Positions 42,490-47,164 of a stretch of DNA of 64,000 nucleotides are shown piece after piece; position 1 is the stretch's first letter; each line of letters opens with the position of its first letter. The notes beneath the pieces are model-generated. The model did no database searches. It was not told where the DNA came from and worked only from the letters and a program-made list of their open reading frames with translations. Position numbers and translations under genes: made by a program. This DNA comes from Octopus sinensis (lineage: Eukaryota). The stretch lies in the NCBI RefSeq assembly GCF_006345805.1, contig NC_043014.1, positions 4,154,001-4,218,000 of the forward strand, read 5' to 3'.

Positions 42490-44885
42490 AATATTTGTTG
42501 TGCAAGATTTTTTACGTGAAGTCGTGTGTTGAAACAGATATTGTTATATTTCGGAATGGTCATATTGACATATTTGGTGTTATTTTGCTTCAGTGTTATT
42601 TATTTTTTACATTAATCTTAATCTTATTTCGGCCAGAGTTCTTTCGTCACACTCCTGTGACCGCATCAGTGGTCCTTTGATTTCTTCTTTCTTATTTGTG
42701 TCTCTCCTTACTAACCGTAAGCCTTTTTGTATTTCTATTGTATGTCTTCATTTGCGCATGCTTATATCTCTATGTGCGTCTATGTTTATATAGTGTGTGT
42801 ATGTGGGGGGATGCCTGTAATATTTCTATCTTCTGTTTATATACGTTCATGTAATTGGTATTTTGTTTCTGTTGTTGTTGTTTTTGTTTATTCTTATTTT
42901 GTTCATATGTTTACATCTACTTATTATTATCATTACATATGCTTGTATGTATGTATGTATGTATAACAACAATACTAGTAATAACAATAATAAATCGAAT
43001 TGAAAAAAAAATATATATATACATATATATACACACACATATATATACATATATATATATATATACATTTATATATATATATATATAGTTATTTATTTCT
43101 ATTTGTTTATTTATCTGTGTATTTATTATGTTTTCTGGATCCTCTATCGTCACATGTTGTGGTGTGTTAGTGCTCCATTCTAGTTTTCTATTCAGGCTAC
43201 GTTTATTTTCTATTATGTGTGTAGCTTCTGTAATTTGTCTAATTGTTGCATCTGTTCTATGTGTGGACAATATTTTAATTTGTATGTTATTGATTGATCC
43301 CCCGTGTTTCTGTTCGGCGTGTTGGTACAGAATCGATGAGCTTTTACCTTCCTTGAGTTGTCTCCAATGTCCATTTACCCGCTCTCCTATGCTTCTTGCC
43401 GTTTCCCCTACGTATGTCGTCTTGTTACTGCATCGTCCCTCTATACATCTTATACTATAGACTACATTCCTGGCTTTACAGTTTGTTTGTGGGCTAAATC
43501 TACATACAGTACAGTACTTATCCGTACTGGGGGTTCTACTAAAAGGATAGGTTCTACCAATTATAGATTTGATAGGGTTGCCTGGCTTTTCAACAACGTT
43601 AATTCTTAGCTTCAGTTTGTCTAGGGTCCTTCTAAAGCGGTACGCCAGTTCACCTCCAGGGGTGGTGTCAACGAACATGACACTCTGGTATTTATGGTTA
43701 TCATACCATAAGTTGGCCTTCCCTATTTTCTTTTTTGTCCTTTCTATAGTGTTCCATGACTTGTTCCTATAGAGTGGGCAAATACCATTCCTATCATTAC
43801 ATAATATATTATCAAATTTCTTCATGGCTCCTTTGTATACTCTGATCCTTTCTTTATGGATGTAACCTGAGAACTGCATGCGGTGAATGAAATATCGTAT
43901 GTGTTTCTTTAACTCTGTAGGCTCGCACATGCGTGACACATTTCTCATTATTCTGACGAGGTCTGCCATCAAAATATTGAATTTGGCATTGTCCGCAATG
44001 GCTGAGTTCCGGTGGATCAAGTATTTTGAGGCCATAGGTTTGGCATAGTATGAATGAAGGATTTGGGTTTTATTATTCACAATTTCTAGCCAGAGTTCAG
44101 TGTCTAGCACTGGTAGTCTATGGTTGGGGTGTTTAGTGGGGTAGTCTATTGTAACCTTAATACTCTGGAGGATGGAGTTATCTATTTGCTGGATACTCTC
44201 CATAGTATTAGTTTCTATTTCTCTTTCAAGAGTACTCTCTTGTGGGGGTGCCTTTACCACTATGTTGATATCATCAACATAGCGAGAGTACATGTTTACG
44301 AGTATGGAGTTCTGTGTTAGGCGTTCTTTAAGCCTTCTGTCCCACCATACCATGGAAAGGTTAGCCACATCACCAGCGATACTAACGCCGATAGCTGCCC
44401 CCTCGTCCTAGGCATATATTTTATTATTAAACTTAAACGTGTGGCCTTTTAGGGTAACTCTTATACTAGCTCCTAGTGCATGTGCGATCATTTTCTTTAC
44501 CTGATGGACATTTGCGGGGCTCCGTATGGCTCTGGTCCATCCGCGCCACCTTTCTATATGTGTCTTCCTAGCCATAGACGTAATTGTGGGCGGTCTACCT
44601 CTTAAACATCTACTGGGGCAGAAACTACTAAGATTATGCTTATCTAAGTATTCATTATTACATGTCAGTCTAAGTAGGAGGCCCAGTTCTTCTGTGTTGA
44701 CATTACGGAACTCCACCTGGCTCTCGTTGATCATCTCCACGCACTTCTCCACCGCAAAATCTACGTCGATCGATGGGTATAGGGATACCACATCCATGCT
44801 ACCCACCATACATCCTGTCAGGTCACAAGTGTTGTTACAGTCATTGATCCTGCTGAGGAGATCTTATGTGCTGTCACAAACATCA
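42490..44885 (-). mobile_element. Penelope-like element (RT + GIY-YIG), 5'-truncated, with stops; 3' pLTR relic
   Basis: VGSMDVVSLYPSI..KIYA*DEGAAIGVSIAGDVANL..YSRYVDDI..CTVC..NCKARNVVYSIRC..TYVGETARSIGERVNGH. Degenerate hammerhead at 42631-42675. Confidence 0.88.
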
Positions 44886-46560
44886 ATTTTATATTTACCT
44901 GGTAACTTCGAATTATCAATCGCTGATAACCCAGCCTCGGCCTGTTTCATAATTTCAATCCCACGACTTCTGTCTGACAATGTTCCAGCGTATACTCGTC
45001 CCAAGCTCTTGACGGGCTCTTCCTTGACTGTTGGAATGCTTTCTTCAGATATTCGAAACTTAAATTCTTTCTGCACTCCCTTAACAAATGTCAGACTACG
45101 CGACTTTTTTGCTCTAAATCGCATCCTTGACCACCTTACAAGTTCGTCTAATCTCAAGAGGGCATTCTGCATGATTTGTTTATCTGTAGCTAGAAGTGTC
45201 ACGTCATCCATGAAGGCTTTCTTAGGCGATTGTACATGGGCGATTTGTTCCGAAAAATCTACACCTTCCAAAATCAACTCCATGACTAAGATAAACCACG
45301 TGACAGATATCGTACAGCCAGCAGCAATGCCAACTTCCAATCGGTGCCAATTTGTTGTAAAATTTCCAGTCGTAAACCTCATTTCGAAACTGTCATAGTA
45401 CATCCTCATTATTTTGATCACTTTGTCAGGAATGTGGAAGTGGTCCATGGCTGTTATTAGTAATTTGTGTAAATATGCCACTGTTCTCCTCGACAGAATT
45501 CCCATAAAGATCTTGCCTTGTAGGTATCCTTGATATGAGCATCCAATTCTTCTTTAGTGCACGATAAAGTGCCACTCTTCGGTTCAGTGAATAGCTTCTT
45601 AGTAAACCCGTACGGGTCCTTCAGAAACTGCCCCCGAGTCCTTTTACTTTCTTTTCGACGCTCATATCGGCGGATATGTCGTTGCACATAACGACATTTC
45701 CTCTTCAAATCGTTATACAGCAGCGCAAGGCCAGGTTTCTCATCTAGTGCAGCACATCTCCATCGCTTTCTTAAGTCGGACTTTTCCTTCCTCAACTGCT
45801 GCATTTTTCTGATCCTCTGCTTGGTCCACACTTTCCTTTCTCTAGCCGGATATTCTCTTTTATTCCAAATAAATCTTTTCCTATATCGTATATTGAGCTT
45901 GATAATTTGCCCAGTTTCTCCACTGTAGAGCCTGTCATTTTATAAAGAGCCCGACAAACCTTGTTTTCAAACTCTTTATATTTCACTTTCTCATTAGCAG
46001 CAGGCCACAAAACCCTCGGTTTCCTCTGAGTATTATCCGATGCACCAGTTTCATGACTTGTAGTTTCATCACGCGAAGAGGTCTCTGCTGTAGCATTTAT
46101 CGATCCGCTGTGGTTTGAGTCCGGGGATGATTTGCCACGTGTTTTACGATCTGACGATCCACACTGCTCTGTCCTCTTCTCACAAGTCTTTCCCTGATGT
46201 ATCTTCAAGCCTCTCACAGTTGCAAAGGTTCTACAGCACAGCTTGCATCCAAAGTTGTTTGCATTTCGTTCGCTGTTCGAATGAATAACCGCACTCATTT
46301 CCAAGGTCATTTCCGTGCTGACTCGGTTTGATTGATTCTCAATTCTCCCCTCTCGGTCGATCGTGGGGCTGTCATATCCATTCATATCTGTTACAATATA
46401 TTACAAAGGCGAGGATCGTAAGTCCGCAGCCTCCACCAGTCTTTCCTGGTGTCGATAGTCTTTCCTATTGTCCGCTCGTCTTTCCGAGCAGTCCTCTTGT
46501 CTTTCCAAGATGCCTAACCGTCTTTCCGGTTTGTCAGTGGTTCCCTACCACAAGGTCTTA
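44886..46560 (-). mobile_element. HERO-like RLE LINE: 5' UTR, N-terminal zinc finger, RT; internally deleted, 3'-truncated
   Basis: CKLCCRTFATVRGLKIHQGKTC; PRVLWPAANE; FLKDPYGFTKKLF; GIAAGCTISV..KAFMDDVTL..KKSRSL..EEPVKSLGR..SKLPGKYKI. Confidence 0.8.
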
Positions 46561-46935
46561 GATGTCTTGCAAACAACTTGCACATGCAAGTGCTACCAGT
46601 TAAAAGCTCCGTATACCGGAAGCTAGCAAGTGTATGGGGTCATCAGGAGAGATTGCGCGCCGTTTCGGGGCCTACCTCTCGACGGCATCAATGCGCACCG
46701 GCCCGCCTCACTGATATGAGGCCCCGCTTGCTAGATCAGCTGGTTATGAAGAACTCAATATACTTCTAGCCATCGCTCATCGTCTCTTTTTAACCAAATC
46801 CAGTGGCTAGCCTTCTCCACTGTAGATTGGATATCAGTCATGATGGTATTGACTTTACGATGAGTTAGGCCTAGCGATAACAACAGTCGTCTCACGCTGT
46901 GTCCAACAAACCCTCTACATCCAATTTCTTTATTA
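46561..46935 (-). mobile_element. HERO-like LINE extreme C-terminus and 3' UTR
   Basis: EIGCRGFVGHSVRRLLLSLGL..VEKASHWIWLKRDDERW*, followed by a structured UTR. Confidence 0.75.
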
Positions 46936-47164
46936 GCCACATGGGCCCAAACATAGAGGGGGACAATACAGCCTGATTGGGGTCAGACACTCAATGATTA
47001 TATGACTTTTAAAATTTTACAAAATATAATGAAATCGAATGAAATCGAATGAGATACAAAAGGACGAAATACACACGTGAGATGAAGCAGAGAGATGGCT
47101 TACGCTCCGACCCCACGAGCCCCATTCTCCTACTGAAACATTTGTATGCAGACTTATGACATGT

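Follow-up and report, generated by a model that had tools for sequence, protein, structure and literature searches.

The stretch of DNA analysed here, 64,000 nucleotides (nt) of Octopus sinensis contig NC_043014.1 (positions 4,154,001 to 4,218,000; called the window below, with coordinates counted from its first letter), carries on its minus strand a damaged retrotransposon that resembles the HERO long interspersed nuclear elements (LINEs). On the sense strand of this element, at what would be the extreme 5′ end of its unit, lies a run of five short tandem hairpins, preceded by a leading hairpin (H0). The five hairpins were identified from the sequence and a minimum free energy (MFE) fold, and H0 from the fold and from related elements:

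46532-46551, minus strand: leading hairpin H0, GUGGU-AGGGA-ACCAC (46551-46537), then a UGACA spacer
46516-46531, minus strand: hairpin 1, AACCG-GAAAGA-CGGUU
46495-46510, minus strand: hairpin 2, UCUUG-GAAAGA-CAAGA
46472-46491, minus strand: hairpin 3, CUGCUCG-GAAAGA-CGAGCGG, 7 base pairs (bp)
46455-46468, minus strand: hairpin 4, AUAG-GAAAGA-CUAU
46434-46451, minus strand: hairpin 5, CACCAG-GAAAGA-CUGGUG

The sequence reads exactly as the original prediction had described it: all five hairpins at 46434-46531 are fully paired and, on the minus (sense) strand, each presents a GAAAGA loop on a G-C closing pair. Successive hairpins are spaced by 21, 21, 20 and 19 nt. The core of hairpin 3 (GCUCG-GAAAGA-CGAGC, 46489-46474) extends outwards to 7 bp (46491-46472) through a U.G pair available on the sense strand only, its plus strand equivalent being an A.C mismatch. 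The word GGAAAGAC occurs 6 times in the window against 1.19 occurrences expected, a number reached in 0/100 shuffles. When folded, the sense RNA of 121 nt gives precisely these five hairpins (−39.8 kcal/mol, z = −6.43, 0/200 shuffles), all of which are retained in the fold of the entire 415-nt intergenic RNA. The antisense strand folds less well (−31.6 kcal/mol, z = −4.67). Searches of the array and its flanks against Rfam 15, in the window and in the relatives described below, gave no relevant match at E values up to 10, and neither a classical hammerhead nor an HDV-like or other Rfam family was found there. A coding explanation was rejected, the period of the array (18–22 nt across relatives) being no multiple of 3; an open reading frame (ORF) on the plus strand (46328-46561, 77 amino acids with a repeated 'VFP') is an artefact of the repeated TCTTTCC word and not a gene.

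Contigs carrying related elements were gathered by means of the N-terminal ORF, of relatives of the reverse transcriptase (RT) and of a DNA pattern scan; most of them are marine metagenome assemblies whose hosts are unknown. The pattern scan of metagenome DNA was seeded with only AGAC; the matches listed were mostly unrelated DNA, and among them only L013 and L044 are relatives. A protein-guided scan of JGI metagenome contigs with an N-terminal alignment found nothing, and a sea-urchin copy (L132), which is truncated, and an Aplysia gene model, whose gene range was too long, yielded no usable 5′ end. In total, 11 further independent elements, at ~30–80% protein identity, were found to possess hairpins at the same place: six in L044, four in L002/L003, L005, L128 and L133/134, three in L004, L006, L127, L129-131 and L135, and two in L013. 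The relatives keep both the word and the pairing around it, rather than an unpaired word or no array at all.

The loops and stems of these arrays behave very differently. Among 37 hairpins from ten elements, the loop is GAAAGA in 24, GAGAGA in 6, GAAGAGA in 4, GAAUAGA in 2 and GAUAGA in 1, and GAAAAGA is a further variant in the family; the invariance that had been claimed for the GAAAGA loop thus holds within the window copy and not across the family. The closing pair is G-C in 34 of the 37 hairpins, which have 23 different stems of 3–7 bp. Past this pair the stems extend by 3.4 bp, as compared to 0.77 bp for mispaired flanks (0/20000 permutations). Covariation was analysed on a gapless alignment of 34 hairpins with six-nucleotide loops. 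Paired cells amount to 88.8% (54.9% in shuffles, 0/500) and covariation is scored at 0.909, as compared to 0.212 in shuffles, with no slid register exceeding 0.21; changes on both sides are seen at all five stem pairs, and pairing is kept through such changes in 65 cells where 20 were expected. The claim of a selected structure rather than a simple repeat is therefore borne out in the window copy and its 11 relatives: the stems covary while, apart from the variants listed above, the loop and its closing pair stay constant. A GAC is present in 27/34 spacers. The distant member L135 retains the hairpins and the GAC spacers with loops GAAUAGG and GAUAGU, and L128 displays a recent duplication of a two-hairpin unit.

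Two explanations at the DNA level have to be weighed against these figures. A neutral minisatellite, that is, functionless tandem duplication of a palindromic unit, would fit the 19-nt period reported by Tandem Repeats Finder and the recent duplication in L128. However, this program detects just 2.5 copies in the window array, at 82% identity, because the stems differ between hairpins, and a plain tandem repeat was rejected since the copies are unlike over the whole unit. Together with the pairing kept through changes on both sides and the retention of the array at the same place down to 30% protein identity, this makes a neutral origin very improbable, and we strongly disfavour it. An array of transcription factor sites serving as internal promoter, like the monomers of mouse L1, would answer the need of LINEs for internal promoters, and the GGAAAGAC word does recur with GAC about every 10 bp; but DNA sites do not need flanks which vary from copy to copy and yet remain mutually complementary, and the covariation is very strong. 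We consider this explanation improbable, although a promoter role and an RNA-structure role are not mutually exclusive. We are confident that the array is a selected RNA structure.

The strand on which it folds is indicated by the wobble pairs. At the four inner stem pairs, G.U was found 7 times and A.C once; therefore the folded species is likely the RNA of the sense strand, as had been claimed for the window copy. The hairpins could instead act on the single-stranded minus-strand complementary DNA (cDNA), or in template jumping when reverse transcription comes to its end, second-strand priming being one example. The cDNA does form its 3′ end where the array lies, at the extreme 5′ end of the unit, and the antisense strand also folds; the pairs that are G.U in the RNA would nevertheless be mismatches in the cDNA, and the sense fold is the more stable of the two. 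We give little credence to a role of this kind.

The array is part of a larger structured region. H0 is conserved in the relatives, with covarying stems (GGUGGUA/UACCACU, GUGGCA/UGCCAC, GCAG/CUGC, CUCGG/CCGAG and CUGG/CCAG), and MFE folds of these sequences show H0 first, next the array and then a hairpin whose core is GGG-loop-CCC. Two further conserved elements occupy the 5′ untranslated region (UTR) between the array and the zinc finger coding sequence: this GGG-(cuaacua)-CCC-core hairpin, just 3′ of the array, and a CCCC...GGGG hairpin directly followed by GAGAAUGA. They are found at 46372-46339 (minus strand) in the window, at ~325-365 in L005, and in L127, L128, L129 and L133. The AUG within GAGAAUGA may be a real start codon or belong to an upstream ORF; the window reads AUU.

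On either side of the array are pieces of two copies of the same family:

45792-46385, minus strand: first ORF piece of the array-bearing copy, with an N-terminal CCHC-type zinc finger (CKLCCRTFATVRGLKIHQGKTC) and a basic region (ORF and tblastn)
46559/46560, minus strand: putative junction, where the upstream copy ends (...GACAUCU at its 3′ end) and the unit starts (placed by analogy with relatives)
46755-46940, minus strand: C-terminal end and stop codon of the upstream copy (..EIGCRGFVGH..ASHWIWLKRDDERWLEVY) (ORF and tblastn)

From 46385 downward, the minus strand contains frameshifted pieces encoding the N-terminal CCHC-type zinc finger (..GLKIHQGK..C) and a LINE-type RT (RVT_1), the later ones reaching ~44885 with frameshifts and an internal deletion. 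In tblastn searches with the relative protein P0006, residues 1-124, 160-237 and 425-619 aligned to 46208-44885, and the C-terminal 230 residues, from another copy, to 52526-51977 and 46928-46764. The array-bearing copy is dead: besides its frameshifts and internal deletion, it is cut off near 44885 by a separate 5′-truncated element (44809-42917, minus strand). Its start codon is uncertain, 46385 being only the first in-frame ATG; the AUG position kept in relatives corresponds to ~46343-46341 and is mutated in the window. The upstream copy is 5′-truncated and stops at 46755; its 3′ UTR extends down to the junction.

The complete protein can be described from the relatives. A search with an intact one retrieved 484 proteins at E ≤ 1e-10, typically of ~1060 amino acids, the named ones coming from Aplysia, Octopus, Oculina, Diadema, Branchiostoma and fishes. 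Full-length members contain, in this order, the zinc finger, an Arg/Lys-rich region, the RT, a CCHC motif, a PD..ELTV..K restriction-like endonuclease and a ..ASHWIWLKR(D/E)D..W C-terminus. RVT_1 was matched in the window fragment and in P0006 and P0023; Pfam profiles otherwise gave only zf-RVT in some relatives, and no endonuclease profile match. The C-terminal CCHC and endonuclease motifs were read by eye, in P0006 and P0023 (CRCG..H....C; KKPDLVIW..ELTVPHE..K) and in the window fragments 52153-51908 and 46940-46755. The best match of a family protein among solved structures is R2Bm (8gh6, E 7e-25), ahead of LINE-1 ORF2p. Judged from these sequences, the array belongs to a LINE of the R2 superfamily whose protein has a zinc finger at its N-terminus, an RT and a probable restriction-like endonuclease, and since its best structure matches are R2 proteins ahead of LINE-1 ORF2p, the label 'HERO-like', under which it had been introduced in the original prediction, is reasonable. 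Its domain order agrees with that published for HERO, and so does its host range, named relatives occurring in lancelet, sea urchin, fish, molluscs and coral (published HERO range, PMC9004415). HERO families which target microsatellites are on record (PMC4640811), and the (TA)n target of L133 (see below) fits with this.

The ends of the unit were defined by setting what follows the last copy against what separates tandem copies, which gave the following 3′ ends:

L006: 195 nt shared, ending ...AAACUCUCU
L127: 444-nt direct repeat, ending ...AAACUACAUC
L129: ending ...GUAGUUCU
L133: a (TA)n tract, then 48 nt of 3′ UTR, then the 5′ UTR

At each of these proven boundaries (L006, L127, L129 and L133), the first array hairpin begins 23–44 nt after the junction; by analogy, the window array would begin about 29 nt after a junction near 46560/46559. 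The array had been placed 50–150 nt upstream of the ORF. In the window it does lie 49–146 nt upstream of the ATG at 46385, but across elements the array-to-ORF distance goes from ~50 to 220 nt and the distance to the boundary is the more regular feature.

The units are almost always arranged head to tail. The 3′ UTR of a full or 5′-truncated upstream copy precedes all the full-length units examined except L128, and this layout is seen in the window, L002, L005, L006, L127 (444 nt of upstream copy), L129-131, L133 and L135. The upstream copy may be complete or as short as 48 nt; that of L133, a partial one, borders on a (TA)n microsatellite. A stretch of the L133 3′ UTR which looks like a tRNA was not called by ARAGORN. 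Since units are preceded by an upstream 3′ UTR, the template RNA is probably longer than one unit, or circular. Such head-to-tail copies, which resemble pseudo-LTRs, are otherwise typical of Penelope-like elements (PMC11167929).

GAAA(C) and CUGANGA words are conserved in the 3′ UTR just upstream of the unit, though their order is not that of the classical hammerhead types. A script combined with manual comparison defined the following core in the window:

46640-46704, minus strand: hammerhead-like core in the 3′ UTR of the upstream copy, block order S-G-C
46704-46700, minus strand: stem II, 5′ strand
C46681, minus strand: H17
46680-46674, minus strand: stem I, 5′ strand
46666-46663, minus strand: GAAA
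46646-46640, minus strand: CUGAUGA

Its closing helices extend to ~46737 and ~46622. The script required U16.1-H17, a stem I abutting H17 and CUGANGA, and a stem III abutting GAAA. It returned exactly one parse in 10/10 elements (window, L002, L004, L005, L006, L127, L128, L130, L133 and L135) as compared to 18/2000 (0.9%) shuffled controls. Stems I and III differ between elements and yet stay paired, and the proximal pair of stem II is G-C in 10/10; stem II itself was assigned by manual comparison, the automatic partner search being ambiguous. The core nucleotides (CUGANGA, GAAA, U16.1-H17 and G10.1-C11.1) are thus present with stems I and III in S-G-C order, and this order, together with a short linker between stems I and II, matches the non-circularly permuted hammerheads of Eckert et al. 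2023. One feature departs from them: the strands after CUGANGA and before GAAA are not paired with one another (L130 alone allows 4 bp), the latter pairing instead with an upstream G-starting strand next to distal stem III. On the sequences compared, the core would be interrupted between A9 and G10.1 and the break closed by an additional helix. Rfam gave no match to this core, and full-text literature searches found no description of a hammerhead-type core in LINEs with restriction-like endonucleases. If it cleaves, it would be a new hammerhead topology and the first reported in such a LINE.

Several other features of the window were recorded. The upstream copy is split, within its endonuclease domain, by a LINE of the AP-endonuclease (APE) type at ~51811-47165 (minus strand), which has a zinc knuckle in its ORF1, a start that resembles an AP endonuclease, an RT and a zf-RVT at the C-terminus. 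On either side of this insertion there is a match to residues 1011-1022 of the reference protein, which suggests a target-site duplication or an alignment overhang. The element at 44809-42917 which interrupts the array-bearing copy has RT motifs resembling those of Penelope-like elements (DVVSLYPSID, YVDDINIV) and a motif like GIY-YIG (VVYSIRC..YVGETARSIGERVNGH); it continues into a TA-rich microsatellite, and its identity is weakly supported (I-TevI, E 0.41, no Pfam match). Reading its C-terminal ORF (44368-42917) as GIY-YIG had prompted the view that the host of the array is a Penelope-like element. This was rejected: the Penelope-like part is a separate insertion, the ORFs beside the array carry LINE RT motifs (FMDDVTLL), the relatives end in a CCHC motif and a restriction-like endonuclease, and their best PDB matches are R2 proteins. 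At 40021-34613 and 33343-33185 (minus strand) the window contains a fragment resembling ribosomal DNA, in which the 28S starts at model position 665 and has ~2.5 kb of extra sequence in its 3′ half, and the 5.8S follows rather than precedes the 28S. The left half (1-27000) is made of a ~11.9 kb tandem repeat rich in microsatellite-like arrays of 8–14 nt, which yield many spurious miRNA-family matches.

What the array does may be approached from its position and from its layout: a leading hairpin, then two to six short hairpins ~20 nt apart, with GARAGA loops on a G-C pair and GAC-containing spacers. The reading that we favour, tentatively and with slightly more doubt than confidence, is that of a multivalent protein-docking RNA platform tied to the unit boundary and used for assembling ribonucleoprotein particles (RNPs) or for positioning the RT. 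The most probable binder would be the protein encoded by the element's ORF, which could use its zinc finger and arginine-rich N-terminal region, or else its RT; in the family proteins the zinc finger is followed by a strongly basic, helix-like Arg/Lys-rich region, which makes this a candidate binding region. The platform would then assemble the RNP at the unit boundary and, on a multimeric or circular template, it would stand immediately downstream of the site where reverse transcription starts. The R2 protein binds a 5′ RNA motif, and the array could act like this motif. Alternatively, its counterpart could be a region of the Penelope-like element PAc by which internal initiation is positioned: the PAc protein binds its own RNA downstream of an RT start site that is internal (PMC11167929). 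The original prediction had likewise inferred a protein-binding array, for RNP assembly, translation initiation or packaging; here too the docking of a protein, the choice of the binder and the task of the array, be it RT positioning or RNP assembly, are inferred. A kissing interaction of the loops with the 3′ UTR (GARAGA with UCUCUC tracts or with a ..CUCU 3′ end) was also considered and dropped, the complementary tracts being unconserved across relatives.

A bolder version, which we consider unlikely, is that HERO-like LINEs replicate like Penelope-like elements or retrozymes, with multimeric transcripts, cutting by the permuted hammerhead, possible circularisation and the array as a landing pad which would make the RT start internally at the unit boundary; a bacterial module described below would then have evolved independently. 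If true, this would be a rolling or multimeric template mechanism, new for LINEs with restriction-like endonucleases.

Four observations weigh against a docking platform of this kind, or against parts of it. Last copies end precisely at the 3′ boundary without any 'tail' derived from the array, and internal initiation beside the array therefore lacks direct evidence. The full-length L128 has no copy of an upstream 3′ UTR in the 425 nt available, and the loops have drifted in L135. Finally, the GAC-stem-GGARAGAC-stem module was also found in bacterial transfer-messenger RNAs (tmRNAs), in leaders of ribosomal RNA (rRNA) and in a phage-like contig.

These bacterial arrays came from a metagenome pattern scan keyed on the loop word, in which the spacer was left unspecified. 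Among the matches listed, at least six tmRNAs of actinobacterial type carry the array unit (L007, 10131-10190; L018, 1819-1880; L063; L078, 1205-1265; L099, 6917-6975; and L111). In each, three hairpins follow one another in tandem, with GGAAAGAC in the loops, GAC in the spacers and stems that differ; they occupy the part downstream of the tag reading frame in which pseudoknots are normally found. They were identified as tmRNAs by Rfam and ARAGORN; the tag is ANKQFALAA or ANQQFALAA, and smpB-like ORFs adjoin. Also among the matches listed, the module occurs ~300–390 nt upstream of 16S rRNA (L042 and L084), ~30–100 nt upstream of 23S rRNA (L072), in the leader or spacer of a bacterial rRNA operon (L079), as six units between ORFs of a phage-like contig (L071), and in L104. 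The bacterial unit consists of a GAC spacer, a variable stem of 4–6 bp and a G-GARAGA-C loop, with at least three units per array and covarying stems. GAC spacer, variable stem and loop are thus the same as in the LINE array, whereas the bacterial arrays belong to non-mobile RNAs with no homologous protein nearby. The relation between the two is either convergent or a shared property of RNA. Positions 2056-2063 of E. coli 23S rRNA, in the A2058 region, also read GGAAAGAC (PMC12887398); Erm and TLR13 both target this region. Mimicry of rRNA by the eukaryotic element was judged unlikely, GGAAAGAC being absent from the window's own 28S. The bacterial module raises the separate question of the function of the GGAAAGAC loop.

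Since the LINE protein cannot be the bacterial partner, the loop may be a generic module or the ligand of a widespread host factor. The parallel weakens the idea of a loop tailored to the LINE protein, and suggests either that the RNA module has some property of its own or that the arrays have converged on ligands of a common kind. An unusually stable or self-organising RNA module, employed wherever a compact run of hairpins is needed and without a sequence-specific ligand, would account for units identical down to their GAC spacers in at least six tmRNAs, at least three to four rRNA leader or spacer regions and a phage-like contig, all the more as the spacer was unspecified in the search pattern. 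However, nearest-neighbour parameters give the GAAAGA hexaloop no special bonus, the conservation of the loop across 30–80% protein identity exceeds what mere stability requires, and the cross-domain cases were ascertained through a search for the loop word. Such a generic module is, in our opinion, quite unlikely.

The same parallel, as pointing to a partner or property that is not element-specific, is also in favour of a host-factor or translation element. Here the array would stabilise an uncapped or processed 5′ end by blocking exonucleases, or recruit host proteins or ribosomes for cap-independent translation or nuclear export of the intronless RNA. Its GA-rich loops are like the binding sites of SR-type proteins, and in the 5′ UTR it is followed by further conserved hairpins and by the conserved hairpin-AUG block. 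For R2 proteins, moreover, translation relies on a non-canonical mechanism of unknown nature (PMC13580325). The distance to the ORF nevertheless varies four-fold while that to the boundary is tight, and no known fold of an internal ribosome entry site or of an exoribonuclease-resistant RNA was matched in Rfam. We regard a host-factor or translation role as rather unlikely.

The docking platform has partial counterparts among known systems. The UTR motifs of R2 (the 5′ protein-binding motif and the 3′ UTR) belong to the same element superfamily; there, structured UTR RNA is recognised by the element's own protein to organise target-primed reverse transcription, and the array would play a comparable part. 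Near the ORF start, the R2 5′ motif forms a large fold with a pseudoknot, whereas the array is a run of short hairpins with one loop sequence. In phage lambda, the boxB hairpin presents a purine-rich loop (GAAAA or GAAGA) that is read by the arginine-rich peptide of N, and its stem sequence matters little, just as the stems of the array vary. The likeness to boxB put forward in the original prediction extends to the purine-rich loop on a short hairpin and not to the loop type: boxB is a single 5-bp hairpin with a GNRA-like pentaloop that serves antitermination, whereas the array, in a eukaryotic retrotransposon, has two to six hairpins with loops of 6–7 nt. In the 3′ stem-loops of stringent-type LINEs (the L2 clade and its partners among short interspersed elements), the RT reads the loop sequence and the stem may vary; these are, however, single hairpins at the 3′ end, while the array is repeated at the 5′ boundary. 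Penelope-like elements share with the array-bearing family the head-to-tail partial tandem copies and a hammerhead-type core in the repeat, which in the latter has a permuted S-G-C order, and for PAc, protein binding requires a stretch of RNA immediately downstream of the RT start, placed as the array would be (PMC11167929). They differ in having a telomerase-like RT and GIY-YIG instead of a LINE-type RT and a restriction-like endonuclease, and no hairpin array has been reported for PAc.

By analogy, the array would work like boxB, the LINE 3′ stem-loops and the R2 UTR motifs, and yet it is a member of none of these classes because of its hexaloop, its array form, its position at the 5′ boundary and the lack of an Rfam match. 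Its kind, the cis-acting structured RNA of retrotransposons, is already known; the array itself is undescribed, full-text literature searches having found no publication on it, in agreement with the earlier assertion.

To copy its element, a retrotransposon protein has to recognise its own RNA and to begin and terminate at precise ends. The RNA signals used by R2 and Penelope-like elements are only partly known, and we are aware of none described for the HERO clade. A modular, covarying array with a fixed loop is an easily testable candidate for such a signal. It could explain cis-preference and boundary definition in a clade of LINEs widespread in animals, and could serve as a compact handle in gene-insertion tools based on relatives of R2. 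The hammerhead-like core and the head-to-tail layout further hint that LINEs and Penelope-like elements may share more replication logic than thought.

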